From: Bugula neritina
Taxonomy: Eukaryota > Animalia > Bryozoa
Direction: 5' to 3'
Length of the DNA stretch: 64,000 nucleotides
Assembly (NCBI GenBank): GCA_964035545.1
Contig: OZ037766.1
Location: forward strand, 30,680,773 to 30,744,772
The position numbers and the translations under genes were made by a program. The notes under the pieces were generated by a model. It was not told the origin of the DNA, did no database searches, and worked only from the letters and a program-made list of their open reading frames with translations. Below, piece after piece: positions 6,980 to 63,073 of this stretch (positions within the stretch are counted from its first letter, which is position 1; the number at the start of each line of letters is the position of its first letter).

Positions 6980-9650
6980 ACATATTTGTGATTGAATATG
7001 AATATCAAGTGAGAATGATAGTTTCTAAATTCATACTATTCCTTCATTTTAATTATGATTATAATGAAAAATGACACATTAAAATAATTGTAGCAATAAA
7101 CATTCCATTTGATTATTGTCAATATTCATCATATCCTAAAAATTATAATTACAGTCTTAATGGTTGCAACGAATATGATTGTGATAATGGTGATAATCAC
7201 CACATTCACTTTAAACACTTAATAATATAAATATCATAAACTTAAATTGAACAATCAATAATATCAATATTACAACATTTAATTACTAAACCTGAAATCA
7301 ACTTTTACTTTTACAGTTACTGTAACTTTGAAATTTTTAGGACGATGACCAATTGTGAATAATATCCACTATTATAATATTCAACTACCTCAGTTATATA
7401 CTTCAGCAGTTACAACAACTTAGAGCCAGTGAGTAACTTCATAAATTTAGATAAAATACAAAAAAAATCTACTTGAAAAATTACATTTTTTCACGATTAG
7501 TTTCACAAATAGTAGGAGTTAATTAAAATTGAGTTCAATGAGTTAAATATCAAAGTCAATCCGAATACTGTTATATTACTATTTTCCATGATGACGAATA
7601 TTACCGTCATAATAAATATGATAATATCATACAACTATACAACTTTCCTTGCGGTAATTATAAAACTATTTATCAAGATCAAGATGTATTGATAGTCCTA
7701 TTATTCTATGGCACTTGCATTTGCATTAACTTATGCTTACAGTAATAGTTATAGTTACTAAAGTGTTAAACTAAGTCTAATAGTTATAGTAATAATAATA
7801 GCAATCATCAATACTCATAGTGATAGTAAAACTAAGACCTAGTAATAGTTATTAGTTATAGTATTAAAAAAACCTCACCCAAGTTGATGATGAATATTAC
7901 TGTCATAATAAATATGATAATATCATATAACTATACAATTTTCCCTTTTCCTGCGAAAATTATAAAATGATTTATAGAGATCAAGATGTATTGATAGTCC
8001 TATTACTCTATGGCACTTGCATTTGCATTAACTTATGCTTACAGTAATAGTTATAGTTACTAAAGTGTTAAACTAAGTCTAATAGTCATAGTAATACTAA
8101 TAGCAATCATCAATACTCATAGTGATAGTAAAAGTTATTAGTTATAGTATTAAAAAAACCTCACCCAAGTTTATAGTCACTATCCCTGTGAGAAACCCCT
8201 AATGGAAAGAGCTTTTAAAGCAAGCTAATGAATTATTCAGATGAGGCACAGAAGCAATTATGACTGGATGCTTTTCCATACACCACCAATGACCATGACT
8301 TTCAGTCATTAGTTATTGTAATAGGTCTAGTAATATCCAACTTCATAGTTTTATTTATAGTGATATAATATCAAAATATAATACTAAGTCCAATAGCCTA
8401 CTATTACAAAATCCAATATCATTAGTTATACTAATAATAGTTATACTACTTATTTTTAATAATTTAGTTTTAATGAAAACTTCAAGTATAATAATAAAAT
8501 TAAATGCAAAAACATTATGTTAATGCTATTGCTATTTTCACTACATTTTTATTTATTTTTACTAAATAGCTACAAACAGTAAATTTAAAACACAAGTATA
8601 ATTTTTACATTTAGTTTTACTTTTACTACTAAATTTAGTATTAGTGGATACTATTAATGTAGGTATTACTAATAGTAATAGTAATAATATTACTGCTATT
8701 AGCATGAGTAATTAGTACAAGTATTACTCTAACTCTAAGTATGCTCAATAACTAATAAATATTACTATAACTATTGGTATGAAATTGAATATGACATGAG
8801 TGCAAGTAATTTAGTTACTTTTATTTCTGTGTGCTGTAAGTATCAGTTGGTGTAAAACTGATACTCTGATGACTGATAGTGATACTAATACTCACAGTCT
8901 CTGTATGATGATGATAATTTTACTCATTAAGTTATACACTTATAGTTATATTTAAAGTTAAAATTATAGTGGTGATACTGATAGTGATATTATTACTATA
9001 TTGGTCATACGATACTGATAGCCAATGTCATCAGTTATGACTCATGAAGATGGTGAGTCACTGATGACTGGATTAGTGAATGTGAAACACTTACAAGTTA
9101 CACTTATGACTTAGTCTTACAGTTGGTGTTACAGTCATACTCATATTGATATCCGTGATCATAGAGATACTCCTCATACTAAAAGAGTGAAACTCATACT
9201 GATAGTGATACTCATACTGACACTCTGACTCAGTAGTTGAACTTAATCATAATGCCATGGCTAACTACAAGACCAAGTACATGTAAAAGTTTAGCTTGAT
9301 AAAAAATTAATTATTTTATTAATAACTATAAGTATAACTATAAGGTAGAAGTTGAAATAAAAAACATTATTCTATTTTCTAGTGGTAAAATCCATGAATA
9401 ATTACGATGATGAATCTGAAAGTAAATCATGACTGTCACTATCAGTATCAGAATGAGAATGGTTATGGAACAACTTCGACTTGATGAACTTGAAGTTGAA
9501 TTACTGGATTTGAACGGTATGAACTATGAAGCACCGATTAGTTACTGTGAGAGTTTGCAAAAACTGCTACAGCTCATGCTAACGCTAGCAATTCTACTAC
9601 ATTCTGATACAGCAATCAGCAATGTGAATAGGGAATAATTATATCAATAT
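6980..9650. other. 6-bp-phased A[CG]T tract downstream of the nuclear receptor promoter
   Basis: For example 9186-9230 AGT gaa ACT cat ACT gat AGT gat ACT cat ACT gac ACT ctg ACT. Confidence 0.75.
7589..8171. repeat. Tandem duplication of ~290 bp (two diverged copies)
   Basis: Copies ~7589-7884 and ~7885-8171 both end in AAAAAAACCTCACCCAAGTT; they differ by substitutions and a ~16-nt indel. Confidence 0.92.
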
Positions 9651-9739
9651 ATGATAATGATCACAGTTGCGGATACTTATACCAGGGCTACAATGCAATG
9701 ACAAAGCTCAAATCTAACATAAATAAAGCTTATAATCCT

Positions 9740-10030
9740 CACTCGCATGTCGGTGCATTAATAGGAAGAGGTATAAAAGCGTTTCGTTTGACGTACAATA
9801 AATGGTTTCTAGGGGTTTTTCATCGGATTGTGGAATGTATTATCCGCGGTATATTGGTAATATCATAGTAAGCCGTAAAATGTTTCATAACTCAACGAGC
9901 TCACGTGCGCGTTCGAGGCTTGACACAGAGGATCCCACCTTAGCGCGTAATGACGTAAACATTTGCGACAACTTAGCTATAGTCCTTCACGTAGTATAAG
10001 CGACTGAGTATTATACCCGCTCAGCTAGAA
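9740..10030 (-). promoter_or_regulatory. Putative promoter of the nuclear receptor
   Basis: Local CpG cluster with CRE/ATF-like TGACGT (~9790, ~9951) and E-box CACGTG (~9902). Candidate minus-strand donor CTG|GTATAAG near 9683. Confidence 0.5.
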
Positions 10031-10147
10031 AGCCCCAAGGCAATGTATCAAACCAAAGTCAGCTACAGCATTTTGCATTAAGAATTAATCTATAAGCAGC
10101 TCCGAGCTGGAGGTGATTGAGTGCAATAGTTTGAACACTAATCTCAT

Positions 10148-10210
10148 GGTTTTAAACCATTGAACTATAACTATATATATTTTATAGTTGCAGTTCAGTG
10201 GCTTAAACCA
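10148..10210. repeat. Short palindromic dispersed element (second copy at ~52120-52175)
   Basis: AACCATTGAACTATAA...TATAGTT(G/T)CAGTTCAGTGG forms a hairpin; the same sequence recurs 42 kb away. Confidence 0.7.
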
Positions 10211-10614
10211 CTGGACTAGCAATAACATCTCTTTATCTTTATTGGTTCAAACTTCCAACTCATACCCCAACTCCAAAATTGAGAACTTTAAACTACTGCA
10301 CTTTTTCACCCCCAACCCGGAGTGGCTCATAGGATAAGTCCTGCATCAAACTGTTACAATGTCAAAATAATATTATCAAGATCCTCAATAAAACTTTTCC
10401 ACCACACTGATCAAATATATATATAGATTGGTAGAAAGAATTCAGGTCCAAATGAACAGCAGATGTCAATTAAAATATATTATTTTCATGTTGAAACTGT
10501 TATATTGAATATAAAGTGAGGTGGACAGGAACAATGATGCTTCATCTAGTAACTCACATATAAGCAGAGTTTAGTTAATTATATCACACATACAGTAACT
10601 ATTTTAACTGTTAA

Positions 10615-11185
10615 AGGTGACATGCCTTGCCAGCTTTTTTATTTTGAAGACAAAACATTGATCAATTGTTATGCTTAATTATGCTATTCACAATTTTTCT
10701 AGCTGATTTGCTCATCATTTGTTAAACATCGTAGGCATCCAGGTTATTTTGATAAAATCAATTACTGTTAATTAAAAGATCATACTTTTTTAGTTGCATT
10801 CACAAAATATATACAAAAAATCTCAACTCAATATACCAGAAAAAATGAATTAAAATATATGTGTTAATAGCACTGAGATTGACGTGACCGTGGCGCATGA
10901 AAAATCTGAAAGAAGAGTTGTCTTCTATTTTTCTATATTAATATATAGAGCTTGTCGTGAAAATGAAGATTTTTTAAAAAAAATATTGTGATCCTCTGGT
11001 AACTTCCTGAATTTAGAAAATTAACTCATATATTTCTTTTCATGTGGACAACAGCTCACTTTTTTTTAAATTTATTTTGAAGCTCTTTTCGTAAAAAATA
11101 ATCAAAAGTAAAAAATCCAAAATTTTTACAAATTGGTTCGGGGCTTGACGTGAAAGGCATTTGGACGAAGATGTCAAGGTCACCA
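10615..11185. mobile_element. Probable non-autonomous DNA transposon, Kolobok-like
   Basis: Flanked by TTAA on both sides (10611-14, 11186-89). Termini AGGTGAC... and ...GTCACCA are imperfect inverted repeats. No ORF. Confidence 0.5.
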
Positions 11186-11359
11186 TTAATAAATTTATTT
11201 TATCACAATTCACAATACTGCACAGAAAGTTAATGAAGTGGGCTGAAAATTAGGTTGCTAGCATATTCATATTGATATGCATTATATTGATTGTTACAGT
11301 ATTATTTTTTAAATGTGTTTTGTTATCAGTTATGTTTAACTTCTTTATAGAGCTGCTGT

Positions 11360-12000
11360 TAGACTAAGACTAAGAGTAAGACATAATATTAGCAACAATG
11401 AATGATTCAATGATAATATTAATAATTAATATCACTTTAATATTAAATTAAAATTATTATTAAATTGAAATTCACGGTGACGTATCACTATCACTATGAG
11501 TATGAGTATCGTACAAATTAATTATGAGTATGAGTATTACTATGACATTAACTCAATCAGTGATTGACTATTAGTATTACTATGAATATGACTGTGCATA
11601 ACTCAATCACAATGAGAATATCAATATGAATATGGCTTCTAATTCTTGTAACTTTTGACTATCACTATGATGATGCTGATAGTGATAATCACTGCCAGCC
11701 CAAGTCTCATACTCATAGTGATACTATTACTATTGTCTATTAGTATTAATAACTAGTATTACTATTAGTACAACTACTAGTACTGTACTAGTATTACTCA
11801 TAGTTCTGATAATGATGGAGATAATAGTTTTAAAAGTTCTACTTCTACTTTTATAGTAACTGTGAGCTAGATTGTATATGTTGAACTCTACTCATTTTTT
11901 ACTACTAATGCTAATACTAATAGTAATAGTAATACTAATAATAATTATAGTTGTTATAATGATAGTAATACTAATAGTAATAATAACTATTTCAATTTGA
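11360..12000. other. 6-bp-phased A[CG]T tract with no recognised gene
   Basis: For example 11487-11507 ACT atc ACT atg AGT atg AGT, with many similar runs. Confidence 0.7.
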
Positions 12001-13924
12001 TAATTTATGTTTTACAACAGCATTATCGCTTATCAATTACATTGGTTCATAATATGATTATTTTAATTTTGCTTTGTGTGTTTTTTCATGTTGTAAATTT
12101 AAGTTCGTATGGTTATTTAATGAACTAGAGAACTAGCCAAATGTTATGTACCGATTGCAATAATTTACTATAAACTCAGTGAAATTTAAAACCTAATTGA
12201 TATTACTATGACATTGATTGTACAGAGGTAGCTAAAATATACATTAAATTACCAATAATTTTAACTCGCCAATACACTATGAGTAGAACAGTCAAATGCA
12301 ATGATAGAAAATTAATTAGTCATAGCAGCCCGTTGCTTGAGGAACATTGAGCTACAGGTCTAAAATGATTTAGTTTTGTGATCCCTTATATAACAAAATA
12401 ATTTTTTTTAAACTGGTTTAATACTTTTATTATAAACACGCTTATCAAAGTAACATGTTTTTGATGTATATTCTATTAAAAAAGCAATCACATCAGGTTT
12501 TCAATTTGTATGTTGTACAAAGTTTATTATGGTGACAAGTTACTAAATTATATGGTTCAGCTTTGTAAAGTAAAGCTGATAAAATAAATACAATTATGTG
12601 ATTGTTTTACTGCTATATATTAAATTTAAATGAGTTGAATAATATCCTAGTGCATTGAATTAGATATTTTTTTTAGCTTTGGTACACCTGTTTGTTATAG
12701 GCTAACATTCCACCAATAGAAGAATGGTGCAAGTAGAAGAAATTTCAGGTGCAGAAAGCTAAGGAGCAGTCAGAATGCTGCCAGAGTTGTGAAGAGGCAC
12801 TTGAAAAAGCTGAATTTCAATAATGACATGAAATTCGTAACAGATCACCCTGGTGTAATTGAACTGACATGGCCAGCAGAGTTCTCGAAGTCACATACAA
12901 CAGCTATTTACATCATCATGGTTAGCTTAAATGTAATTCCTATATCAGTCTCTAATATATAGTTTGATATCTGCTGTAAATTCGCTTAAGGAGCATACAC
13001 ATAACCAAAACTGAGTTACACTATAGTATTTGTTCTTGAATATATTTACCAAGATAAGTAGATTTGCTAATTCATTAACAGTAAAATTATAATGATACAA
13101 CAATTTTTCTTTTAGATGATTCAATCAATAACACAAGACACTACAACATGGTTTTGCAGTTATAGAGTATTAATTTTCTGGCTCTTTCCAAATCTTCATA
13201 GAAGGCAAAGAAAACCACCGTCAGCTTGCCTTTATAACTGAGTGCACGCGTCTTCCACCTACAGATGATGGTTAACAATTTGCTGGTGTGGAACTTTCTA
13301 ATTTTGTTTACAATGAAGATAGATTATAGGACATTATTCTTTATGTAAAGATTGTCAAGTTTTGTTATAATTAAGAACAGTTTTAGTTTCAATAAATCAG
13401 TTCAACATTATGGACATCATTGCACAAACATTTTAATCTTTACTATCTACAAAGGTATCTGATGGACTACTTAAAAATACAAAACTATGCTCCAGATACA
13501 CAATGCACTGACCAGCAAAGTTAAAATGAGTTGGAGATGTAAAACATAATATCTTGTTCAAGGCTTTTCCCTGCTGTTGGAACCTTCTACTTCAGAACAC
13601 TGAATTGAACAAACATATGTAGATATATGAAACTTTGCAAAAAATAATAATGTGAAATTAGTTGCTAAGTATCACATTGCTAATAAATACAGCATTGTGT
13701 AATGTTTTATTTAATTTTTTTTTGAGCCATTGGATCTATAGGCCCGCATAGTATTTACTATATTATAACTAATAAATTGCAGACACATTATGTCAGACCA
13801 GCTTCCATTTAAATAGAATAGTGTAGGCTATCAAATTTGTAGAAGTAAAAAACCGCATTCATATTTAGTAAAATACTTGCCTTTTTTTTCATGATGCCTC
13901 TACTGCTAAAAAGAGAAGTTTTTA

Positions 13925-15246
13925 TCAATACAGCTCCATCAATCTGTATCCTGATGAAGCTAGTAGTTTAGGAACATTTGTGGGGGGGGGGAGTGTAGGC
14001 TGAGCTGCAGTATAGGAAAAACCCCAACATATGTAATCTATTCAGCACATTATATGTATATTTATTCAAAAAAGGATTTAGAAAATGCTTTATGAAGAGA
14101 TGAACAAAGTAAAAATTAATGCTGGTGAAAGTAATATTATTACACCCATTAGAATTACTAGCAGCTATAGCATTAACATTATGTATTTTCATAAAAATGT
14201 GTCTAATTTATGCTACAAAGTTATTACTGCCAAAGGTTACAAAATTTACCAGTCACATTCATGCAGCTGGCGGAGAATAACTAACTTTCACTTGCAATAA
14301 ATATTATATAATATATTGATAATTATTGGAATCATAATTATATTTATTGTTATGATCATTATGATTATAATTATTTAATATTATCTTTATGTTTGTATTT
14401 AAAGTTGTTCCTTAAATTAAAAGTTGTTTAAGTTTTATAAATTTATTATAATTATATTTCTGTATAAGTATTAGTATAATTAAATTATTATAATTTATAT
14501 TTTATTATTTATATTTATTTCACTTTTTATTTCAAGACCAGCAGTTCAAATTGAAATTAATACTTGTGTCGTTTGCTTTATATTATAACTTACAAGTATA
14601 ACTATTAACATAATAATATTACATTTGCTATTAGTATTACTATGAATATAAATATTTATATTAATATAGCTATCGGTATAACTTATAGTTATAGTTATAC
14701 TTATAGTTATAACTAATATAACTATAAGTATAAGTATTAGTTTCGAAACTGATCCTGCTCCGTAACATTAACATACTGATACTGTCATATGATTATCATT
14801 ATGACTAATAATAGTATTAATAAATATAACCATTGAATATTATTAATAATAGTTCACCAATAGGCGATAGTCATAGACTTAGAGTGAGAGTCAATGTCAT
14901 AGAAATAGAGTTAGACTAGTGACACTCATACTGATACTGATACTCATACTGTGATTCACTTTCAGTTACAAATTTCAAAACTTGGTTTTACGTAGACAAC
15001 TACTAACCTATAATTCATCACAAAACGGTTGAAAATCATCATTTACTGCATATTTAAGAGTAATTTTCTGGTAGTGTGGTCGACATGATAATTGAAATTA
15101 AAATAGGGAAAATAATTATTTTGTGATTTACAGCAAGTTACAAACTAGCGAAATGAAATAGTCCATTTGAAAACAGTTAAATTAGTTACCTTTCTTGATG
15201 TTGCGTAGCTAACGTTAGTTATTAGTAGCCGCCCGAAGAGTAACAT
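13925..15246 (-). CDS. Candidate 55-aa spliced micro-ORF on a transcript divergent from Mtl (may be non-coding)
   Basis: Exons 15246-15190 (AAG|GTAACT), 14280-14250 (G|GTAAAT) and 14004-13925 give MLLFGRLLITNVSYATSRKLFSASCMNVTAQPTLPPPTNVPKLLASSGYRLMELY*. The exon 2 acceptor is weak and no homolog was recognised. Confidence 0.25.
14300..14960. other. 6-bp-phased A[CG]T tract in the first intron of the putative minus-strand transcript
   Basis: 14918-14950 AGT gac ACT cat ACT gat ACT gat ACT cat ACT. Confidence 0.7.
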
Positions 15247-15970
15247 TCATGTGATTTGAGCTACGAATAACGAGAATCTGCGACAAACCCGCTTCTTAAT
15301 AACTTTACGCGATATAAACTCACGCTACAATTGGGCTATTTTGCCATCCCCACGTCACGGAGGGCACGCTCGCGGGCAAGTCTGGGCAAGTCTAAGACAC
15401 CTAATATGACCACTTTTACTTACATTTTTGTAGTGTTTTCGTATAAGAAATTGGGTAAAATGCTGATAAAACAGTTGAAAAGCATGCAAACTTTTGCTCA
15501 AATGTAATAAATAACCTGGAAGCTTACCGCCTTTAAAGGTTTTGCTATAAAAATATTATTTTCATAATCATCTTTATTGACAATATCTGTAAAGACACTG
15601 GCTACATTTACATATCATGATCTTCACCAAAATATTTTAAACATAAGATGCAAATAATATGCAAATATTGTTATAGTAAATAAGACCATTAAAATTATGA
15701 ATAAACATAAAATTTTTATCATAATTTTAAAAAACCGTCAACCTTATTGAAAGTTGTCTTCCTTTGTAAGACTGTCGAACCAATCGACATAACCGGGTGT
15801 GAAGTTGTCTTCTCAATATAACTATAATTAGAAAAGTGAATACTAGCTGGGTTATTTTTATAAACCAATAGAACTTCTGTAATGAAGCGCAGCGCCCTCA
15901 ACCGGAAACCTGATTCTTTTTTTAACATGAAGGTTAGATCAGTGTGAAATGATGATTCAAAACCGGACAA
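15200..15970. promoter_or_regulatory. Putative bidirectional promoter region (Mtl on +, unknown transcript on -)
   Basis: CpG clusters at 15200-15390 (CACGTCACG, tandem GGGCAAGTCT) and 15770-15970 (ETS-like ACCGGAAA at 15901). Phased tracts extend outward on both sides. Confidence 0.5.
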
Positions 15971-16089
15971 TCATTCCTCTTGTGTAGTTTTTTCAGTCAT
16001 CTAGTATATTAGCAATTTGTTTAAGCTTGTTATATTAAATTACAAGTTTAAAAACACATAACAATAATTTATTCGGTAAGCAAAATACT

Positions 16090-17800
16090 TTTAAGTTATG
16101 ATCATTGACATTGGTAATTACACTTACAGTTTGCATTTACTAATTACTTTCACTTTGAGTTTGAAATTTAACTTGAACAGAATAACACCAAGTTAGTGAC
16201 TGAGGCTGTAACGCAACGGACAAAACAGACAGTGACACAGTTGAGCTTGACGTTGTCGAGTGACACTTGCACTGATTTTGAGCATGAAAGTCAAAGCGAA
16301 TGCGAGTCTCACAGTCAGCCTGACGGCGAGTGCATTTTCATGCTCACTTGTAGTTGTTGATGTTCATCGTGATCATCATCACGTTCAATATTCAGTTTTA
16401 TCATTCATACATCATTGTGATTGAATTTGATGTTTTTGACTTCAAGTTCATGTTGAGCCTTGAAGTTGATTCTGGCTCCTGTGATTAATGAGTGAGAATC
16501 AGAGTGACGTGAGCAGATACTCATACTTATACTATCAGTGTCATACTCACTTGATAGTGGTACTGGTAGTAGTATTAAATTTTATGATTATCACCATTAT
16601 TATTGGTAATATAATATTGATAATATTAATCACTACTAATTTTTAAACTTTATACCAACTAATTCAATATTTTTATTAATCAAGCTCAACATTTTGATTT
16701 TGTTTATGCTTCGCATCGTCAACCATCATTGCTATTACAGTTATTACTACTAGGCTTCCATTGTGGACTAGTATTGCTGGTAAAAGTACTAGTATTACTC
16801 TAATAGTAGTACAATCAGCTACAATAGTAATATATTAAATTTAATATTGTAGTTATTTTATCAATTTTATATAACTCACCTATAAGAATTAGAACACTCT
16901 GGTTACAACTACAGGTGAAAAGACACATTAGTGCCTCTTGTGTTGCTTTTTGTTTGGGTTTGTCATATGTCTAAATAAATCTATTCTAGCTAAGTTGAGT
17001 TTAAGTTTTTAATTGTAATGTAAAGAGTTTTAGCTCGTAGCTAAGCTGAGTTTATGTTATGAGATATCTCATTGTGTAATGATTCGAGTGAGAAAATTAA
17101 TGTTAAAAGCCTGTGGGGATGCAGAAATAAATCTAGGTTCTCCTCTTTTGGCTGTGTTGATTTACTGACTTGAATGTAGTAGTTTGATATTTTATTAACA
17201 TTAGTTTAGATATAAGTATAGGTTATACCTATATCGCATATGTGTATTCATTATCTCATGAACTATATTTGTAGTAAATCAAAATATAATAATTTATAGA
17301 AAATAGTATTACAATTATTTATCATTATGCTAATGCTAACTAAATAAATTTAGAGTACTTCTAGCACTTATACTCTTGGTGATGCTAAAACTAACTGTGA
17401 TATTAATGATAAGAGTAAAAGTGATTTTAAAAGTAATGCCTATACTGTAAAACTAAATGATTTAACCAGTTATAATAATGAATACAATAACAATAGATTA
17501 GTTGTAATACCTAATACTAATAGTATTGGTAATGCTGAAAGTCTTGCTAATACTAATAATGGCACAATTAATATTAACTCAGTAATTAATTAGCTTACAG
17601 TTATTATGCTTAAAGTTAATTTTAAACTAAGCTTAAAGATGTTGTACAAATAAATTTATTACTAATACTTATAGAGTAATATTGAAATTTAACCTTACAT
17701 TTATAGTCATTCTCAATGTTATCTCATAGCCATATTGATTATGATAGTTTTACATGTGCAGTGATGAAGACATTTATTCCAAGTTCATATACCCATAGTG
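16090..17800. other. 6-bp-phased A[CG]T tract in the Mtl 5' region
   Basis: For example 16519-16539 ACT cat ACT tat ACT atc AGT. Confidence 0.7.
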
Positions 17801-18644
17801 ATATTTGAATAATACTCAAGTTTGCCTCATATATTAGTTTTTATGTAGTCTAGTTCATTTGAACTTCAAATTCTATTATAAGAGCGTTGAATGATTTTAT
17901 TTTCAGTTGCACTCTATATAATCAACTTCCAATAACTAGACCTGTCTAAAGCTTATCTCTTTAATTCAGTAGTTTATGTTAATCAGCTATTACATAACCA
18001 GTTTGATGATATGGTAGGCAGTAAGTATAGTCTCGTGTATATTACCGCCAACAGTGGCCTACAGTTACCTATATCTGCAGTTATGCTGGCGTTACCTTTT
18101 GACTTGATAATCAACTGTGCATGTGCGAATGTTATGTTTATGATTTTAATTTTTGGTTTAGTGAGAAAAGTAAATACTTCTCAGCTCTATCTACAATAAT
18201 TTAATCGTAAACCTGGTGAACTACAAGCAATTTTATTTTATCTGTGAATTATATAATTTTGATGAATTTATTATTAGTTATGACTTGGCTTTGAAGTTTC
18301 GCAACACAAGCCAGGACGATATGGAATTATATTAATTCTCAACAATAAGTTAGGATTTTACTAATGGTTCGATATGCTGTATTATAGAATATCGAATAAA
18401 CTAAAACCAAAACATGTCTTAACACATCTGTTACTAACCCAACCAAAAGTTATTTAGGATAAATTTTTCACTATGTTATTTAAAAAGGTTAACTTCAACT
18501 TTATTTTAGCTTCTATATGACCATATGCTATACTGAAAATGAGATTTATCCTCAACTGTAGAGTTGACATTAGCATGTTAGACATTGTGTACTTGTAATT
18601 CAGTAGATTCCACAGCAGGGACACATTTGTATAGAGCAGCCAGC

Positions 18645-21919: not shown

Positions 21920-22028
21920 TTTCTGTCGTTCCCTTGCCCACTTGTTTCTTCGGTCATTATAACAATTGTCTCAAAAATGGACTTCACTGTGTTGTGTGAT
22001 GCCAAAAGAACGTAATATGAACACAAGG

Positions 22029-22135: not shown

Positions 22136-23092
22136 CAATTGTTGTTTCATCATTTAGTTTTGGTGTGAAGCCTTACTAAACTTGTCAAGAACTCCTCAAA
22201 TAGTTTTAAAGAACACTTATTTAGAAGATAAGTATTTTCATATCTTTAATCTAAATGTTTATTTCGAATCATTGACAACCAAATATATAAACTTATTTAT
22301 GTAAGCCATGTTCTGTAAAAGTTGTACTCACTGCAACACTTACATAGTCTTATATGGAGTAGTCTGTCTAATATAATTTTGGGCAGATAATTCCCAATAT
22401 TTCTGTGCTAATTTTTGCAGTTTTAAATTGTTTTCATTGTTGAACAGCTTTTGATAGTTAATTTCACTTTTCTGTGACATAAAATAGTTACTGTTATTAT
22501 TAATATTTGGTTGCTAATAATATTTTTATCTTACTCAAATGTTTTTTAATATAATGTAGGCTGAATTTCTAATATATCTATATAAACATGCATAACTATT
22601 GCATCTTATCGGTAAAAGGATAATCTAATAATCTTTAATTTTATGTTGGTTGGAACAGAATAACTCATGTTGTAATTGCATTTATTCAATTAATTTTTTG
22701 TCTGTATAACTTTAATTTTCTTTTTCTTTTAAAGTATTTTTGAATGGTTATAAAATAAAGATACATAGAACACATGAACATCGGCTACTTTAAAAAACTA
22801 GCTGTTGAAAATGTACATGAGTTGATAGTTTTAAATAATGTTCTAAAACATACGCCCGTATATAAATCATTAAGCTGTTCCAATGAACGTTGTGAAAATG
22901 TAGATGAAATCTGGAGGGCTAATGTCGAGTTATCTACTCTTGCTCATGTGCGGAGTAACTCAAAACGGAAACTTACATGTGCGCCATATCCGGTCGAATT
23001 GTTTCTTTGCCGCAAAAGCCAAAGTTGCGTGTATATCACTTTTTCTTTTGTGCTCAAAAATTTTCTTCAAAAGAGATATAATTTTTCATAAT

Positions 23093-28479
<5,387 letters not shown>

Positions 28480-30699: not shown

Positions 30700-31330
30700 A
30701 ATGACTATTAATATTAAATATTCTAACTTATATGACATTTTTATTTTTATTTTAGGTTGAGTATAGGCATACTCATAATGATACTGATAGTGATAGCAAT
30801 ACTCAGTATAACTATAACTATGAGTATGAGTATGACTATCAGTATCACTATAAGTTTGAGTATCACTATGGCTATCAGTATTACAAATACTGGTAGTGTT
30901 GCGGTTAGTATTAGACTTAGTATTACGATAAAGTTGAAGTATGAAGTTAAACTGAAAGTAACACCTAATCTTATACTTACAGTTTTATAAAATTATCATC
31001 ATAAATCATTCAAAATCTAGGTAAATATGGCATGTGATTAATAATAGTATTGATATTTATGATGATGGTGATTTAATTTCATTATCATTATGATTAACAA
31101 TTACAATTTCATTGTCATTGTGGATATACTTATAGTGAGTGCTAGTAGTAATATGTCTACTGCTATTAGTACTGCTACTAGTAGTAACATTTATACTAAT
31201 ACTTCCCTGCTACTAATAACTTCACTTTTAGTACTACTATTATAATATAAATATTCATTGTGATTATGACAAGTGATGATCAACTCAATTCTTAACTAAT
31301 ACTATGTACACATTTACATTATACTGAGTG
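30700..31330. other. 6-bp-phased A[CG]T tract in CTR intron 1
   Basis: 30805-30867 has eleven consecutive A[CG]T triplets at 6-nt spacing. Confidence 0.8.
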
Positions 31331-34327: not shown

Positions 34328-35427
34328 ATGAAGAGTCTAATATCTTTATTTTTCTGTGCTCTACTTTTTAGTAAGTATATCAGTCAGGAACGTGTAACAT
34401 GCAGGAACTCCTATTAGACTATATATGCACACTGCCGACATACTTTGATGACCTTGACCAACTGTCTCACATACACAACTTGCAAGGCTAACTTATGTAA
34501 CATCTCCAGCTGCAGCTAGCAGTCATTTATATATATAGTATATTTTATTTTATACTGATAGCAATTGCTTGTTTCAATTAAGCTGTGTATATATATATAT
34601 ATAAGCTAAATTATTTTATATTTAGCTGCAGTTCACAGCTGCTACCTGGTCAGATTTCCAGTTTGTGGAACTAATGGCAAGACGTACCACAATGACTGCT
34701 ATTTGAAAGTTGAGAATAGCAGGCTACTCAAGAGCTCTCCAAGTGAGTCCACCATCTTTATGCATTTTACAGATCTGTGTGTGCCTGTGTGTGTGCGTGT
34801 GTAAGGGTCATGCGGGGGGGGGGGGGGGAGGGGGAGGGCTTGAAACAGCTACTGTACACAGATTTAGTTATATATGCAGTCATTTGCAAAAGTTTAAGAC
34901 TCCCTGTCAAAATAACAATATGTTTTATATGAAAAATTTTTATTGCATGACATGGCAATATTTGTCCTATGTAAATACGTCATCACAGCATTGCCCTGAG
35001 CTAATAATGCATGATATTTTGTTTATACATCAACATTTTGTTAAAGTTATAACATAGAAGAAATACAACGCTATTAGTTTTGTCAGTGCAAAAAGATAAT
35101 CAATAATGCTTGATTGTAATAAATGTATATAGTACAAACTGTTTGTGTTTTACTCAGTTATATAATATATTATAGTTGCTGCTGGTTACATAATTGAGAC
35201 ATGGGTAGGGCAGCACTTCAAAAAGTTTTGTGTGCACATTATATAATTATATTCTATTTGCTCAATTTAAATGAATTGTTGGATGCAACTCTAAAATTTA
35301 AATATTTCAGTATTGCTGTTGTTGATACTAAGTTTGTTTTTCTTTTGCAGATGCTACACCAATAGAAACCAAGTATTTGGGAGAATGTGGAAATCCTAGA
35401 GTTGTGCCCTCAATAAACAGAAGATAA
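34328..35427 (+). CDS. Secreted single-domain Kazal-type protease inhibitor, 78 aa, 4-Cys form
   Basis: Exons 34328-34370, 34626-34742, 35351-35427 (237 nt, both introns phase 1): MKSLISLFFCALLFTAVHS-CYLVRFPVCGTNGKTYHNDCYLKVENSRLLKSSPNATPIETKYLGECGNPRVVPSINRR*. Signal peptide plus Kazal PVCGxxGxTYxNxC...GxC. AATAAA at ~35474. Confidence 0.88.
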
Positions 35428-35820: not shown

Positions 35821-36224
35821 AAATTATATAATTCATACGAGTATATCAATTTAAGTTTTTCATAAGTGGACGGCCACTGCAGTTGAGCATCATATATATA
35901 CTTGATATACCAGTCATAATATTGATTGTAATAACTAAGCTAGAGCTAGAAATGTGTTTTGAAATTACAGAATAGTTAGTGGAAATAATACTATGACAAC
36001 AAGGTATAGACTATAGAGTATAATATCTAGTACCTATATATTTCAGTTTTATCACAAATATACTTTATGCAACAAATTGGTACAAACTATAGAAGGTTTA
36101 AATTGCATGCATATTTACACTGCAATAAAAAATTCCAAATAGTTGTAATTTGAACAACTTAGCAATGGGAAAGAAATAAAAAAGTGAATCAAAATCACTG
36201 CAGTTGTCTTTCTATTATTCGCAA

Positions 36225-36330
36225 CCAAGTCCACGCCCTTACGCATGGTTTGGAATTTTTGGTCGAGCAGTAATCTGATTGGATACTGTGAGCAGGAGTC
36301 AACTAATCAGCATCACGTAGGTCGTTTGCA
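36225..36330 (+). promoter_or_regulatory. Putative HS6ST promoter
   Basis: GC/KLF box CCACGCCC (~36230), CCAAT box CTGATTGG (~36275) and local CpGs, directly followed by a phased tract. Confidence 0.5.
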
Positions 36331-36379
36331 AGTCAAGGTCGTGGAAGGGCAACTAATCAAACTAGTAACAAGGTGGACC

Positions 36380-37570
36380 ACTAACTCTAATACTTTACTA
36401 ATACTAATACTAATACAGTATTACTAATAGTAATAGTAAAACTAAATAGTAATAAGTCTAGCTCTAATGAGAGTTAGTAAATGCCATCTTCTTCTGAAGT
36501 TAAATTACACTTGTTTTCCTATTTAGATATCTGTAAATTTTACATAATAAACAATAGTGTTACTCTGTTAGGGTAAATATAACTCGAGCAGTAACTGTAA
36601 GTCAAAGTGTGACACTAAGTCTAGCATAAGCATTAACTTTAAGTTTAAGTTTAACACTAACAGCATTTTGATTCTCTTGCTGAATTCTCTCATTTTTTTC
36701 ATTCATATTAAATTATTAATTAATATTTACATTTTGATTTTGATTTTACTTTTACTTTTAGGCTTGCAGTGCAGGTGTGAGCATCAGTATGACTATGAGT
36801 ATGTCATGGGCCTGGGGTGATGGAGAGTAACCACTATCATTGTGAAAATGATTATAATTAAATTATAATTATTAGGTATAAGGTATTACTATTAGTATTA
36901 TTATTACGATTAAGCTTGGCTATTGCTTTTGGATGATAGTAAAACTGATTGTAATTCAAATAGCAGTTGTCTACTAGTTTTAGAACTTGCATAGTCAATT
37001 TAATTTTCATTATATTTATCATTTATTATATTCATCTTGCGAGTACCGGTATCACTATCAGTACCACTATGATTGATGAGTGTGGGTGATTATAGCTATT
37101 AATTAGTATTACTATTGCTCTCATAATAATATTCATGCTTGTTAATTAATTTTTACCTAAAATAATAGTTATAGTAATGTGGGCCATCACATTAACTCTA
37201 ACTCGTCATATGACTAATTGGTCTGAGAAGCATTTGCTCACTCATGTCATTGTGATTCTAATTGTGATTATCATTATCATATATGATTATTTTTGTCATT
37301 GAAATTGAAATCATGATCATTGTGCGCAATAACCATTTATCTCAAGTGTAATAACAATCACAATGTGAGTTTGAACTTAAATTTTTTTACTTCATCATTT
37401 ATTCAGTTTGTTATTAATATCATTATGATATTGATAATGACACTGAGAGTGTATCTGATAGTCATTGTGATTGTAACTCACCAACTGACAGTTACACTGT
37501 GGGTTTTAGTAACATTGAAACCTAGTAGTAGTTGTAAAGGTTTTTACTCAAAAGCACCAACAGTTTGTTA
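36380..37570. other. 6-bp-phased A[CG]T tract in the HS6ST 5' region
   Basis: 36594-36650 ACT gta AGT caa AGT gtg aca cta AGT ... ACT tta AGT tta AGT. Confidence 0.75.
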
Positions 37571-41900: not shown

Positions 41901-44900
41901 TAGCCATCTTATTCTAGGCCCTAGGGTGTGACAGGTCACAAAGACTTTCTACTATTGTGGCCAAGGAGGAATAATGACTGAATGCCCTTCCCAGCATCAC
42001 CAATGGCCTTTTCTGGAGATCAAACCACTGACGTTGTGTTCACTAAGCCAGTACTCTAGCCCCTAGACCACAGCAGGTCATAGTTTGAGCTCTGTGCATT
42101 CTCTCCTAGTCCCTCACTCTAACTGCTCATCTCTCACTCTTTCCACTTCGTCAACTAAGTAATAAAAAGTCTTATTCCAAGCTTGCAAACTTGTGTACTA
42201 TATCTGCTTAGAGTTGGGGTGTTAGAGCCTTGGGCAATATAGTCTGTTTCCTTTTGAGATTCCTCTAATGGTAGTATATTTAGCTATTGCCAGTTTTTTT
42301 CATCACTTCACTGGTATTTGAATTTCACACAATTTTTATTCCAGGGTTTTCTAGTCGTCTAGTTATTACTACCATTTCCTGTTATTGGAACAGAAAATTG
42401 TAGTGAATCTAAATAATCACCATCTTGCAAATTAGTGTCTTCTTGGAAACTATTATTATTTTGTATATTTAGAGAAAAATGTTTATGTTTTGACAATTTT
42501 CTTCTACATTCCTGCATTCTACATACAATACTGTCACATATTTATGTTACTATATACTGGTACCGTTATTCTTTTGAAATATTTAGTGTATATGTTATTA
42601 TTAGTAGCAGCATTTTTATATTGAATTACAAATAACATGTTTATCTATGGAATTTCAGATAGCATATCCAAATGTTTCATCATTACTAGTGACTAGATGG
42701 GTTGAGCCAATCAGAGTATACACTGCTTCTGCTTTTATACTTTTGTAGATGTAAATCATAGACTTGCCAATTCTGCTTGCATTCTAAAAACTGCTTATAT
42801 TCTAAAATACTTCTGTTGCACTCTAGTACATGCATATACTAACTATAGTGTGGGGAAATAATATAGCATTATTACACCATATTTAGTGCAACAACTCCGA
42901 ATTTTGAGTTAGTAATAATTATATTAGTTGTTTTGTATTTTGTAGTGTAACTGTATAGTTTGATTATTCTAGTAATTTCTTGCAGGCAACGATGAGTCAG
43001 ATGTTATGGTCTTTCTGCACATGCAGAAAACAGGTGGCACCTTCTTTGGTAAGAATCTAGTGAGGAATCTGCAGCTACATACTCCTTGTAGGTGTGATAA
43101 AGGGAAGGGCATGTTGAAGTGCCCCTGTACCAGTCCAGATGGGAAACGGTACGTTGGCTACATCTCAGTAATGTGTGAAAGTAATACGGCAGTTTTAATT
43201 GGCTGTTACACTGTCTTCTTAACTGTAATTGGCTACATTTATTATTCACTCTGTCTTCATTATATGGCTATAGATATTTCTATTTTAATATGAACTTGCT
43301 GTATTCTCTTCATCTATTGGCTATTATATTCTCTTTATAGTTATTGGCTGTTTTATCTCATCAGTTATTGGCTATTATATTCTCTTCAGTTATTGGCTGT
43401 TCTATTCTCTACAGCTATTGGCTGTTCTCTCGATACTCTGTCGGCTGGAAGTGTGGCCTTCACGCTGACTATACAGAACTTACAGAGTGTCTTCTCTCTG
43501 GAAAACTGGACGAATTGGAACAGCAGACGAGGCAGAGAAGGTAGATTTGTGTTGGAGAAATATATAGCTCCCTTACCTCTTTTTCTAAAGAACGGATAAT
43601 AAACTTTTTCACTTGATAAAATATATGACATCACCCTTACACTTACTGGAAATAACATCATATTTATTACATCCTTTCTAGTGTACAGCTCTGCTCTAGG
43701 ATATATCTAACATGTCAGTTATTACAACTAGTGTTTAGGATTGTGTAGCACCTATTCTCGACATGACTTGTATTTCCATGTTGTGTTTGCCAGGTACCAT
43801 TACGTGACCGTACTTCGAGACCCGATGTCAAGGTTTGTCAGCGAGTGGCAGCATGTCTCTCGGGGAGCTTCCTGGATAGACTCCACCCACAAGTACGACT
43901 CTTGATTTCCTGTTGACCTATGAACTCTGTCTACAGTATAGAATATGTCTACAGTATAGAACGTGTCTACAGTATAGAATGTGTCTACAGTATAGAGTGT
44001 GTCTACAGTATAGAGTGTGTCTACAGTATAGAATGCGTCTACAGTATAGAATATATCTACAGTATAGAATATGTCTACAGTATAGAATATGTCTACAGTA
44101 TAGAATGTATCTACAGTATAGAATATATCTACAGTATAGAGTGTGTCTACAGTATAGAATATGTCTACAGTATAGAGTGTGTCTACAGTATAGAATATAT
44201 CTACAGTATAGAATGTGTCTACAGTATAGAATATATCTACAGTATAGAATATATCTACAGTATAGAATGCGTCTACAGTATAGAATATGTCTACAGTATA
44301 GAACGTGTCTACAGTATAGAATGTGTCTACAGTATAGAGTGTGTCTACAGTATAGAATGTGTCTACAGTATAGAGTGTGTCTACAGTATAGAACGTGTCT
44401 ACAGTATAGAGTGTGTCTACAGTATAGAACGTGTCTACAGTATAGAGTGTATCTACAGTATAGAATATATCTACAGTATAGAATATGTCTACAGTATAGA
44501 ATATGTCTACAGTATAGAACATGTCTACAGTATAGAACATGTCTACAGTATAGACTGTGTCTACAGTATAGAATATGTCTACAGTATAGAATATATCTAC
44601 AGTATAGAACGTGTCTACAGTATAGACTGTGTATACAGTATAGAATATGTCTACAGTATAGAGTGTGTCTACAGTATAGAGTGTGTCTACAGTATAGAAC
44701 GTGTCTACAGTATAGAGTGTGTCTACAGTATAGAACGTGCCTACAGTATAGAATATGTCTACAGTATAGAGTGTGTCTACAGTATAGAGTGTGTCTACAG
44801 TATAGAACGTGCCTACAGTATAGAATATGTCTACAGTATAGAACATATCTACAGTATAGAGTGTGTCTACAGTATAGAATATGCCTACCTGCTGCAGGTG

Positions 44901-47499: not shown

Positions 47500-47570
47500 A
47501 AATTCCCGTGGTGTAACGCAAAAGCACAGCTCATCGCGCATGCGTTATACTCTATTCCGGTGTACACATG
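47500..47570 (+). promoter_or_regulatory. Putative eIF5B promoter with an NRF1-type site
   Basis: GCGCATGCG at 47536-47544 within a CpG cluster; ETS-like TTCCGG at ~47555. Confidence 0.55.
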
Positions 47571-47749
47571 TCTTGCCAATTCCAACAAATTTTAACTTTG
47601 AGTTTCTATTGGATTGCTCCATTTTCAATCATAATTAATTTTTAATACTTGCTGGTGTTCAGAGCTTTCAACCGCGTTATTTTACATGCGGTCATATTTT
47701 TAGTAGTTGTTTTTTGCACCCAGTGGTTTTAAGCTAACCGTAGCGGTAA

Positions 47750-48130
47750 TGTGAAAGTAAAACTGAAGCTAGAACTAGAAGACGAAGTAGAAGTAAAACT
47801 AAAAGTAAAAGGAACCCAAATTCAATAAATATTAAAAATAAATGATTAATTCTAAATGATAGAAGTAGAAGTAGAACATCCACGTAAGACTAGAAGTCAA
47901 AGCTAGATAAAATTTAAACTAAATTAACAATCACAATGCCTAAGCCAAAGAAAGGAAGCAAAAAAGTTGCCGAATCGTAAGTGTTACTTCATGTTTAAAG
48001 ATAAAGTTGAGAATTTAATGAAATTTTTCTATTTTATTATAATTATAAATTGAAATATAATAAATTTAATATTTATAGTACCGGTAAATGTCAGAGCCAA
48101 GATGTAAGTAGTAATACTAATATTACTAAT
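47750..48130. other. 6-bp-phased A[CG]T tract in the eIF5B 5' UTR and intron 1
   Basis: 47756-47806 AGT aaa ACT gaa gct aga ACT aga aga cga AGT aga AGT aaa ACT aaa AGT. Confidence 0.75.
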
Positions 48131-59225: not shown

Positions 59226-60185
59226 GGAGATAAGCTAAATGAGAGCTACTTAGCACCTTGTGACAACTGCCTTCATTGGATAGCAGGTGCTACGTTGACC
59301 AATGAGAAGGAGCTACTTAGCATAACGTAAACATTATTGACTTGCCTCTTTATCTTAATTGGGCTTGCTCTTTTTACTAGTTTTATGGTCACCGCTATTT
59401 GTCTTCATGATTACAATTGATTGTGTAATCAGTAAAATGAACAGTGACTTCTAAAATGACTGTAAAAGTATTTAGCAGTTGAGATCTGATAGATTTATGT
59501 GTTGCTAATTTTTGAAACTTCTCTATTTATTTTGAGGTTGCTCACTGTCCTCATGTGCTTTTTATTCGAAATAATTTCATTCCTCGAGTCTTATTCATTA
59601 GCTTGTTAGCTACCATCATACACAAATATAATTTTAAAATTATGCTATATATCCTAATACAGCCTGCTATTGTCGAATATGAATATTATTTGGTTTATAT
59701 CACTACAGGAGTTGTCTCACTTTCATTCTACACGAGCAGACAACTGCAAATATTTAGTAAAAATCATGAGAGTAATTGTGTATATAAGAACTCGAGTAAT
59801 GCACTGTTGGCGGCTATGAACAGCACAATCAGGTAGTTTGGTACGCTTGCACTTACAAATAATATGCAAACAAAACAAGAAGCTGTGCAATTTGTAAAAA
59901 AATTATTTTGTGCCTAAACTAAAACTTTGTGAAATTGAATCCATGTCATAATTGAAATTTCAGTTATAAGTATAAAATATTCAAATATTATTAATACACA
60001 TGTAAGCTTAGAAATAGTTCACAAGTGACGGGTGGCTACAATCCCTACAGCATTTATAGCATAAAACAGATATGGAACTGGAGGCTAGAGTCAGTGTCAG
60101 CATGCAAACCTGAAACTAAAAGCTCATACTAAAGTATCCACAATAGTAACATGAAAGGGGATAACTCCCAGTTTGGTATTCAGCT

Positions 60186-63073
60186 TCAAGATTCCATCTC
60201 TCCCCCTCCCTGGACGAGAGGTCTAGCATATTCCACAAAGTCATCTATAAGTACTGGCCATGCACCTGAAACAACACAACAGTTTACAACTACATGGGTA
60301 CATTGTTACATATGTCTGCCCACAGATACACTTGACCTCAATAAAGTGGACAACTCCCAAATGTATGCAAATAGTTTGATAAATAAATATACCCTTCCAT
60401 ATAGAGCTGAATGGATTAAGAGTTACATGAGAGAAAACTTTAGCATATTTCCTTAAATTGAAAGAAGGGGGGGGGGGGGTATACACACCTTCCTCATCAT
60501 AGTTAGACATGGTTTCATTGATAATATTTGAGAAATCCAATAGTAAGTACCAGGTGTCTTTGGGTATACTTCTTTTATGGTGTTCCTACAGACATAGAAA
60601 GTAAACTTGATAGTAGTAGAAGTAGTAGAGAGTTTAATGGTTAACACCCAATATTCTACCCTTTGTTCTGTTTTAGTTAGGGTTATAACAAATCTACCTG
60701 CAGTGAGTGTAGCGGTATATAGTAATGTATAGTAGCTAGTAAGTATAACAGATATACTTACAGTAAGAAATGTGCACCAGAGATTTAAGAATCTAAACCT
60801 TCCTTTCATTACTATATTCCAGTAAGCGAGGGCGACATCCAAATCTACCAGACAGAAACAGTCATACATTCTATTATATACCAATTATACAGTATATACA
60901 AATTACACAGTGTATACTAACTATACAGTATATACTAACAGTACAATACTATATACTAACAGTACAGCAGTCACTGTTGAGACATTTTATGAAAGGACAA
61001 AATAAAACCAGTAGAGGTAATGGCGCTAACAGTAGAATAAATATAGCCCACATTTAAACTATTATTGAAATAATTTTTCTACTAGCCAAAACCTTATACA
61101 TTGTCTAACGGAATGAAACTCATGGCACCAGGAATAGAGAGTTTGTATGAAGAGCATTGAATAATAATATTATAGTAAAACTGCTAAACCATTTCTTAAG
61201 AATGCTATGGTATGAATAAACATATAATTTATCAATCACTGAAACTGCAAACAAATTAATAGTTGAACAACTGAATTCCTCACCCAATCCTTTCTGTCCA
61301 GCATTTTTAGCATAATTAAATGTGAAATGGTAGAACTGACGAAATTTGGACAGATCTGATATTTCTGTTTCGAGAGCGTGAAACTTTGATTTTAATTTCT
61401 CAATGCTGTCACACCTACAAAACAAAATCCACATAACACAATGCTTCACCAACATGGCACACTGGGAGAATATGTTGAACTTTAGAATGGTTCATTTAAG
61501 ACACAGTGGGAAGCCAGAAAACTCTGCAGCTTTTCTCACTCCACGGTAAATGTCACTTTTTAATATGACTATTCACAGGATATGATGTTTTAGGAACATG
61601 CTATTGGCACAGCTTGCATAACACTCTTAGCATCACTAAGCTATCTGGTATGTAATACCATAGCTAGTTGAATTTACACTGAGTGTAGCTTTAACATTGC
61701 TTATTCAATAAACTTTACTTAAAAGCATGATGTATATTCTTTTCTTTAAACTGGTGTTCAAATCCAAAGTAACATTGGTCTGTAGCACTTTTTCATAAAT
61801 TTGACTTTTGAAAAAGGCAAATTTATGAAAATATCATTTATTTACATTAGTATCATGAAACTTTTAATTGCTTTGTTGAAAGTTGTTTTGTAAAATACAT
61901 TCCATTTGACATGACAAATTAATTAGTTTAAAAATTAAAAATGAGTTGAATATGTATTACCCAATCTCCACCATGCCTCTCATAAACTCTTCTTTAGTGA
62001 ATTCACACTGTTTACTGGCTTGAAACTTCCATGCTATGACTAAGACTAACAAGTTGTCAGGAGTTAGCTCCATATCTTCCAAAAACTTCATGACTCCATT
62101 GGCTGTCATTTTGGTAGAATCTCTTTCATCTGCAATAATATTTATTATATAATATTATAATATAAAAAGCAGCAACAGCTGAAATTTCAATATAGGAAGT
62201 TAATGACAAAATTAACAAAAAAATATCTATTTGACCTTTGTAGCGAGAAAAGAGGTGTTCTAGTTTGGCTCGATCCACTGTGCTCCGTGATGAACTGTGA
62301 GAAGAAGATTGAGAGTACCTATCAGCGTGCTGAAAGTAGTGGTCAATTGCTTGGTCTACCTTCCAGTCAAATGATGTGAGACACTGTAGAGCCACCCTCT
62401 CAGCAGCGTGTGTGAATGACATAAACTGCCTTAGTTTGTCTTTCTGTGATGACTTCAACTTTGCTGACTTGAAGTATACATCAAATAGTGTAATGCAGCA
62501 TAGAGAAGCTTAAAATAAAGTGAAGGAGACCAATTAGGTTGCTTTTGCTAAAATAAATTGTATAAATTTATTTATAAACATAAAGTTATGATTATAATTA
62601 AGTTTAACTATTAGTATTAGCATTAGCCATTACTATAAGTAGAACTATAAGATTAAGTATAGGTAATCAGTGAAATTCTACTATAACCTATAACTTATAC
62701 ATATAAGTATAACTAGTAATATCACCAATAGTATCACTATTATTAAATTAATATACTGATATCAATATTACCTTTAGCCTTAAGTTTACTTGTTAACTGT
62801 TGAGGAATATTAAATTTAATATTAATAACAATAATAATATTATTAAAAATATTAATATAGATATAGCGATGGCCCATAATTACTACTGGTAGTAGTACTA
62901 GACAAAGTATGAAAGTTACACTTAAAGTTTCTTCGACACCAACATGAATATTAAATAATCACCAGTCTCAGTGAATGTAATTTGTATTTAAATTCAACGT
63001 TTCGGGGAAACTCAAACTACATCACTGTCAGAATGAGAGTGAGAATGAGAGTCAGAGTGAGAGTGCTTACCAT
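60186..63073 (-). CDS. DCUN1D1: DCN1-like neddylation E3 (UBA + PONY domain), DCUN1D1/2 type
   Basis: Exons (minus): 63073-63071 (ATG only), 62467-62236, 62129-61961, 61414-61284, 60844-60762, 60585-60489, 60265-60186. [69 protein letters not shown]. Confidence 0.95.
62580..63068. other. 6-bp-phased A[CG]T tract in DCN1 intron 1
   Basis: 63032-63064 AAT gag AGT gag AAT gag AGT cag AGT gag AGT, with similar runs at 62600-62780. Confidence 0.75.

Follow-up and report, generated by a model that had tools for sequence, protein, structure and literature searches.

Phased A[C/G]T tracts behind promoters of the bryozoan Bugula neritina and of one further animal

Within a 64,000-nucleotide stretch of the genome of the bryozoan Bugula neritina (GCA_964035545.1 assembly, contig OZ037766.1, positions 30,680,773 to 30,744,772 of the forward strand; hereafter the window), we analyzed nine tracts in which the trimer A[C/G]T recurs at a spacing of 6 bp, seven of them apparently just behind the promoters of genes. 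This signature is real, is widespread in this genome, recurs in a second animal, and is undescribed as far as we searched. With a probability of roughly 45%, the tracts are strand-symmetric arrays that slippage built and that weak selection maintains as a platform for binding behind active promoters. A functionless mutational footprint ranks close behind as an explanation, due to the neutral divergence of the tracts and their absence in the bryozoan Watersipora.

We counted A[C/G]T pairs at lag 6 in each of the nine intervals and compared the counts with those in 300 dinucleotide shuffles. Taken in order of position (Table 1), the intervals contained 58, 27, 19, 19, 12, 24, 25, 8, and 14 such pairs against 0.8 to 6.4 in the shuffles. 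This 5- to 15-fold excess was seen in every interval (z of 7.5 to 18.6), no shuffle among the 300 reached the observed value, and autocorrelation peaked at lags of 6, 12, 18, and 24. The shuffle control bears out the period described for these nine tracts in a first-pass annotation of the window. The borders drawn there were generous, with objective cores narrower than the intervals where we delimited them (Table 1), and tract lengths overall ranged from 0.3 to 2.7 kb. As that annotation had also proposed, the triplet between successive trimers varied freely. We found 25 strand-folded spacer classes, with AAT/ATT, ATA/TAT, ATG/CAT, and ATC/GAT the commonest; Tandem Repeats Finder returned only short, low-score pieces; and comparison of tract with tract yielded short low-complexity matches and nothing extended. 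The Bugula tracts are neither a microsatellite nor a satellite family.

The tract signal is strand-symmetric. In transcript orientation, the tracts contained 322 AGT and 313 ACT trimers and so showed no bias between sense and antisense, and both splice-site-like words and poly(A) signals were equally frequent on the two strands. These counts agree with the earlier argument from strand symmetry for a code at the level of DNA rather than RNA. Tract DNA has a GC content of ~27%, 6.5 CpG per kb, and a CpG/GpC ratio of 0.31. We rejected the idea that the tracts encode alternating beta-strand peptides, since such peptides are a side effect of the fixed phase of T and appeared in different frames.

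Gene structures were derived from coding exons and splice sites in the sequence, and transcription start sites are putative throughout. On these structures, seven of the nine tracts appear to lie immediately 3' of a short promoter rich in CpG, most of them inside intron 1. Intron 1 is filled by the tract in DDX3 and in DCN1, where it begins within ~45 bp of the first donor, and the tracts of the NR1D/E75-like nuclear receptor (NR), the Mtl/Rac-like GTPase (Mtl), and HS6ST lie 3' of a CpG-rich promoter-like stretch and 5' of the first coding exon. The promoter-proximal position claimed for these seven tracts stands in general and is looser for the Ctr copper transporter (CTR), whose tract is separated from the CpG peak by 1.3 kb; it occupies the intron that precedes the coding start, possibly intron 2 instead of intron 1. 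The richer flank of Bugula tracts contained more CpG than random positions (13.5 versus 8.7 per 600 bp; p = 0.005). Unidirectional promoters had a tract only downstream, and bidirectional promoters had one on both sides. A tract also precedes the second exon of a DDX5-like gene on chromosome 1, a sequence retrieved for a different reason. The first-pass annotation had associated the longest tracts with regulatory genes, but tract length and first-intron length gave an identical ranking (Spearman 1.0, n = 7), which explains the contrast between regulatory and housekeeping genes.

Consistent with what had been noticed in the window, the signal was absent from internal introns and from the Kazal-domain gene, and it was likewise absent from most internal-exon control loci. 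We observed two tracts in the 100 kb downstream of the window and none of this kind in the 100 kb upstream, which contains tandem lineage-specific membrane-protein genes. The genes of this upstream array (L011-L020; also L026-L027) are related to one another and have L-domain-like, discoidin-like, and Thr/Ser-rich mucin-like exons. No tract was found near an intronless rhomboid-family gene of 288 amino acids (L021:781-1647, minus strand). Genome-wide, five perfect units in phase occurred 25,437 times, and the first 100 of these matches formed 21 clusters, which extrapolates to ~5,300 clusters. Because only 6 of 11 local tracts contained such a five-unit run, ~10,000 tracts is a fair upper estimate, about half of the number of genes. 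The resulting range of ~5,000 to 10,000, which includes transposon copies and plain microsatellites, compares with 20,264 annotated genes in tzBugNeri2.1 (PMC11480708). Together with the loci that lack a tract, it contradicts, outside the housekeeping cluster of the window, the claim that nearly every gene is so marked. CpG and GpC pairs near tracts numbered 369 and 1158 genome-wide (0.32; locally 0.14 to 0.22), counts confounded by transposon copies and asymmetric counting.

We also scanned Joint Genome Institute (JGI) metagenomes with a 24-base phased pattern and obtained 102 matches. A single animal accounted for 48 of these, in two samples (JGI 3300022223 and 3300022205) that we take to be San Francisco Bay sediments. 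The DNA of this second animal has a GC content of 42% and lacks homology to that of Bugula. The animal is probably a bryozoan too, since its HOGA1 protein is 70 to 71% identical to that of Bugula and ~56% identical to that of humans; a PLAG-like protein is only 39% identical. The HOGA1 coding region is intronless in the second animal (L143:10001-10954) and split into two long exons in Bugula (C4:17512613-17514067). In five of five genes (Rab18, a GNAT gene, TXNL4A, HOGA1, and a zinc-finger gene), a tract lies between the CpG-rich promoter and the coding exons, and 12 of 13 distinct tract pairs bracket a gap of 250 to 700 bp with 40 to 64 CpG per kb, against an average of 27, which is the layout of CpG-rich bidirectional promoters with a tract on either side. 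The richer tract flank again stood out (21.4 versus 16.1 CpG; p < 0.001). Tract spacing in this animal is both 6 and 4, allelic indels of 6 and 4 bp occur in the tracts, and nearby direct copies are enriched 12- to 33-fold. CpG is undepleted in its tracts (CpG/GpC of 0.93 to 1.05 versus 0.63).

In a small sample from Watersipora subatra, tracts were missing at the bidirectional promoter of RPS17/NDUFV3 and in the surroundings of two nuclear-receptor genes, in keeping with the lineage restriction that the annotation had suspected. Pattern matches in one Watersipora sequence (L035) proved to be a 25-bp minisatellite, and searches for further bryozoan orthologues with DCN1, HS6ST, the rhomboid gene, and ten open reading frames of the window gave nothing usable. 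CpG observed/expected (o/e) was ~0.78 in Watersipora, 0.6 in the second animal, and ~0.4 in Bugula, which suggests differing levels of methylation among the three.

To follow the tracts through recent evolution, we used the draft assembly GCA_010799875.2, a sibling genome with introns ~11% divergent. This assembly, likewise filed as Bugula neritina, represents the S genotype, and the intron divergence from it, along with a 5% difference in the NR protein, would suit a pair of cryptic species. Both the NR and the Mtl tract are kept in the sibling at 87 to 90% identity, as are control introns. Among indels, those of exactly 6 bp made up 11 of 49 in tracts and 4 of 61 in control introns (p = 0.024), and nearby direct copies were enriched 4- to 7-fold in Bugula tracts. 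These two excesses indicate that slippage builds the arrays. Nearby inverted copies were also enriched, mostly 1.3- to 3-fold and up to 7-fold. CpG sites had changed relative to the sibling at 24 of 34 positions in tracts, 76 of 110 in control introns, and 9 of 27 in promoter sequence (p = 0.005). Since this decay is intron-like and not promoter-like, the Bugula tracts are probably not methylation-free, contrary to the suggestion that they exclude methylation.

A second pattern in the tracts does not follow from slippage. Where neighboring units had an identical spacer, the center alternated between C and G 57 times and repeated 22 times (p = 1e-4), and triplets of centers reading CCC or GGG were depleted (13 of 105; p = 0.002). 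In pattern-unselected tracts of the second animal, alternation prevailed 47 to 23 at period 6 and was even, 86 to 86, at period 4. Pure slippage predicts identical neighbors, which is the opposite of the alternation we observed, so slippage alone is insufficient. The alternation favors a constraint on the sequence.

Considering these findings together, we favor a model in which the tracts would be degenerate tandem arrays made in place by replication slippage, with units of 6 bp and, in the second animal, also of 4 bp, just downstream of promoters that are presumably active in the germ line. Selection that is weak and distributed would keep them up, acting on how dense and how evenly spaced the self-complementary A[C/G]T trimers are rather than on single bases. 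The likely reader would be a DNA-binding factor that tolerates either C or G at the center and loads on repeated sites, possibly a multi-finger or polymerizing protein, and it may label the first nucleosomes of genes with broad expression as active. Behind their own promoters, transposons that need transcription would bear an equal mark. An identical trimer and phase at many nonhomologous loci argues for this model, and a binding platform accounts for the convergence on one trimer, the C/G alternation, and the transposon copies. Also in its favor are the placement of tracts at unidirectional and bidirectional promoters, the CpG-enriched flank in both animals, the lack of tracts at the tandem lineage-specific genes and the Kazal gene, and the even use of the two strands.

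Several observations weigh against a selected platform. The tracts have diverged by 10.6% and 12.5% from the sibling, compared with 10 to 13% in control introns, and thus show no slowing. Phased motifs were kept no better than lag-matched controls (18 of 68 versus 55 of 176 lost; p = 0.53, with low power in a small sample), and an apparent two-fold conservation of phased motifs disappeared once the lag-matched control was applied. Comparison of orthologous introns, which the annotation had proposed as a check, thus yielded the indel bias it foresaw and no detectable conservation of the motif. We identified no binding protein, and AP-1 sites were not enriched in Bugula tracts (4 versus 7.4 expected). 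Finally, the Watersipora housekeeping promoters that we examined work without tracts.

A neutral footprint is a reading nearly as good as the binding platform. Promoter-proximal mutation and repair linked to germ-line transcription, combining slippage with fold-back copying that turns ACT into AGT, would write functionless arrays 3' of start sites. Neutral-rate divergence of the tracts, their 6-bp indels, the nearby direct copies in both animals, and the inverted copies all fit such a process, as do the scaling of tract length with intron room, the presence of tracts in a transposon with decayed genes, and their absence in Watersipora. However, we know of no process that favors A[C/G]T at even spacing. 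Moreover, C-to-G is the rarest substitution class in control introns (~7%), yet the center alternates between these bases while A and T stay, and fold-back copies are enriched only modestly.

It is improbable that the tracts work through DNA mechanics with no specific reader. Here, AT-rich, A-tract-free DNA with flexible TA, TG, and CA steps and odd palindromes would alter nucleosomes or absorb supercoiling, much as has been proposed for the periodic An/Tn clusters (PATCs) of Caenorhabditis elegans (bioRxiv 10.64898/2026.08.08.743475). The composition of the tracts is suitable, with AA/TT at an o/e of 0.83 to 0.84, TA at 1.13, TG at 1.24, and runs of A5 on the sense strand depleted to 1.1 versus 4.5 per kb, and single-stranded tract DNA folds better than shuffles in 12-mer blocks (mean z of -1.2 and -1.5 versus -0.1). 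Periods of 6 and 4 are nevertheless out of phase with the helix, so that no net curvature is expected; base identity at lags 10 and 11 was at background (0.288 and 0.278), giving no 10- to 11-bp signal in the tracts, and a nucleosome-length GC period looked for at the tracts was not clear.

Two of the nine tracts lie in a DNA transposon that splits the head-to-head NR/Mtl promoter pair. The insert proper spans 10726-15532 (~4.8 kb) between TTAA copies at 10722-25 and 15533-36, has an imperfect 24-bp terminal inverted repeat (18 of 24 matching), and exists in at least 30 genome copies, of which 21 are full-length at 98 to 100% identity. Its copies form subfamilies at 98 to 100% and at 91 to 94% identity, the latter with ~555 extra bases. 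The sibling genome has a single TTAA and no insert at this site, with NR and Mtl head-to-head and a tract on each side. We saw no transposase in the insert, and decayed pieces in it that look like KolX by eye had no Pfam or PDB match. Kolobok elements such as Kol0 have termini of 5'-RR and YY-3' (PMC9587614). Like Kol0, the insert has a TTAA target duplication and short terminal inverted repeats, with a possible KolX-like relic, and its right end, CT, obeys the termini rule; unlike Kol0, its left end starts with AC, it yielded no transposase, and it carries phased tracts behind both ends. On sequence grounds, the insert fits a nonautonomous Kolobok-like element. Both of its tracts are directly inward of the ends, which reproduces the layout at host genes behind inward-facing ends.

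A single transposon or satellite family that seeded promoters and left the tracts as relics would explain these two tracts, and a MEGF8-like gene 20 kb downstream of the window offers a third case, in that a 25-bp inverted repeat (88%) encloses a strong tract (L022:7884 to L023:762) in what is probably another DNA transposon. The promoter-side tract of the same gene (L021:4250-5650) is interrupted by a reverse-transcriptase fragment of a long interspersed nuclear element (LINE; ~L021:4690-5290). PATCs, too, have been reported to derive from Helitron minisatellites. However, a common origin for all tracts is very unlikely. Host tracts share only low-complexity matches of 30 to 100 bp with the transposon and with each other, the NR and Mtl tracts are single syntenic copies that predate the insertion and do not derive from it, and the second animal has no DNA homology. 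Searched against the genome, the CTR and HS6ST tracts gave no further copies, with a CA repeat saturating that search.

Equally unlikely is an RNA-level element, in which words resembling 5' splice sites or branch sites bind U1 or U2 and prevent early termination, or act as in plant-like intron-mediated enhancement: tracts do start from the first donor and contain words similar to GTRAGT and CTRAY, and GTRA has a slight sense bias in Bugula (164 versus 124; p = 0.02), but GTRAG (20 versus 21) and GTRAGT (10 versus 10) are balanced between the sense and antisense strands, AGT and ACT are equally common, AATAAA shows no depletion, and the second animal shows no strand bias. On these counts, we also rejected U1 telescripting.

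Among known systems, PATCs are the closest in their way of working, which supports the analogy drawn in the first-pass annotation. PATCs have a 10-bp period of A/T runs and are proposed to arise by transcription-linked repeat remodeling and later to protect expression (PMC4947018; bioRxiv 10.64898/2026.08.08.743475). Like PATCs, the tracts are abundant, lineage-restricted, degenerate, periodic noncoding DNA in introns of expressed genes. In contrast to the helix-matching 10-bp A/T runs, their period is 6 (and 4), A runs are depleted, and the unit is A[C/G]T; they are also confined to the first 0.3 to 2.7 kb. Like the tracts, CpG islands are a compositional landmark of the 5' end in genes with broad expression and occur on either side of a bidirectional promoter, whereas Bugula tracts have neither the high CpG o/e nor the high GC of islands, lose CpG as introns do, and are beside the CpG-rich promoter instead of on it. 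Plant GA/CT 5' gradients with BPC, and the Drosophila GAGA factor and CLAMP, are cases of promoter-proximal simple repeats with repeat-binding factors. These repeats are likewise slippage-prone short units just downstream of start sites, but they are near-perfect repeats of a single unit, whereas the tracts fix only three of six positions and alternate C and G. IRF hexamer elements (GAAA[G/C]T) load at 6-bp spacing, and the AP-1 site is TGA[C/G]TCA. Both share with the tracts an A[C/G]T core with an interchangeable center, and neither is enriched in Bugula tracts, which contain no IRF-type repeats; the second animal has 12, a minor class. We found no description of such tracts in the literature, with most subscription journals outside the scope of our search, and the passages of bryozoan genome papers that we searched do not mention them.

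The features of the window are collected in Table 1. The exon encoding the NR ligand-binding domain (LBD) matches B. neritina KAF6028828.1 at 95% identity. Many of the internal introns in DDX3, HS6ST, and eIF5B (24827-60967) contain unrelated minisatellites with units of 14 to 54 bp, for example 53 copies of an 18-bp unit at 43928-44888. Elsewhere in the genome, clusters of C2H2 zinc-finger genes on chromosome 5 (14.56-14.72 Mb) and chromosome 8 (8.45-8.57 and 10.73-10.78 Mb) are candidate tract readers. Small contigs (C33, C66, C85, C101, C110, C114, C160, C175, and others) contain intron-poor Ras and proteasome matches that read through TAA and TAG and almost never TGA. This ciliate-code-like read-through makes ciliate contamination a probable source of these unplaced scaffolds.

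Table 1. Tracts, promoters, and other features of the window (z, lag-6 A[C/G]T pairs against shuffles)
Feature	Position	Strand	Evidence or remark
NR first coding exon, start of zf-C4	3801-4046	-	
NR tract, putative first intron, minus-strand gene	6980-9650 (core 7741-9496)	.	z 18.6; sibling orthologue ~89% identical
Tandem duplication of ~290 bp within NR tract	7589-8174	.	88% self-match; 287-bp alignment gap, absent from sibling
NR CpG-rich promoter and putative noncoding exon 1, donor near 9680	9677-10020	-	CpG o/e 1.23 in 9501-10000; low CpG loss versus sibling; putative start site
Young nonautonomous Kolobok-like DNA transposon, TTAA duplication	10722-15536	.	Copies; empty sibling site
Tract in transposon, just inward of left end, upstream of KolX-like relic	11360-12000	.	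z 16.3
Decayed coding pieces like KolX / P2X7 ballast, stops and frameshifts	12700-13240	+	Resemblance by eye
Tract in transposon, inward of CpG-rich right end	14300-14960	.	z 15.8
CpG-rich promoter-like stretch, transposon right end	15000-15400	-	CpG o/e 1.22; recurs beside tract in many copies
Mtl promoter and putative noncoding exon 1, donor 16076	15780-16075	+	Sequence; Ras-family match; putative start site
Mtl intron 1 tract	16090-17800 (core 16259-16570, weaker beyond)	.	z 7.5; present in sibling
DDX3 promoter plus first coding exon, with ATG at 23095 and donor after 23137	22940-23137	+	Sequence; DEAD match in gene
DDX3 tract, most of intron 1	23180-23530	.	z 10.0
CTR tract, intron (1 or 2) before first coding exon (ATG 31877)	30700-31330	.	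z 14.7; Ctr Pfam match
Secreted Kazal-domain gene, no tract, no CpG peak (negative control)	34329-34745	+	
HS6ST promoter-like stretch	36220-36372	+	Sequence; putative; CCAAT, GC-box, and E-box-like words
HS6ST tract directly behind promoter, before first coding exon (ATG 38916)	36380-37570	.	z 12.9; sulfotransferase match in gene
eIF5B CpG-rich promoter	47500-47745	+	CpG o/e 1.06
eIF5B tract around first coding exon (ATG 47937); 5' part is 5' untranslated region (UTR) or UTR intron	47750-48130	.	z 7.9; sequence
DCN1 tract from first splice donor, minus-strand gene	62580-63068	.	z 9.2; UBA match in exon 2; sequence
DCN1 exon 1, with ATG at its end, plus CpG-rich promoter	63069-63420	-	CpG o/e 1.16; sequence

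The tracts bear on how broadly expressed genes are marked at their promoters, and how own DNA is told from foreign DNA, in animals without classical CpG islands, an issue for which PATCs are the main precedent, with a different period and motif. We tentatively extend the binding-platform model to the proposal that in some bryozoans, and perhaps in other spiralians, a factor might read phased A[C/G]T arrays and thereby license constitutive or germ-line transcription, that transposons might copy this code against silencing, and that Watersipora would have lost it or never gained it. With ~5,000 to 10,000 sites, the signature offers a natural comparison: it occurs in two animals whose DNA shows no homology, transposons carry it, and another cheilostome lacks it. 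If functional, the tracts would point to a new reader or a new mechanism of chromatin and would offer a rule for designing transgenes in a species that produces bryostatin; if neutral, they would be a record of an undescribed transcription-linked mutation process. In either case, the tracts can be used as a marker of gene 5' ends in annotation.

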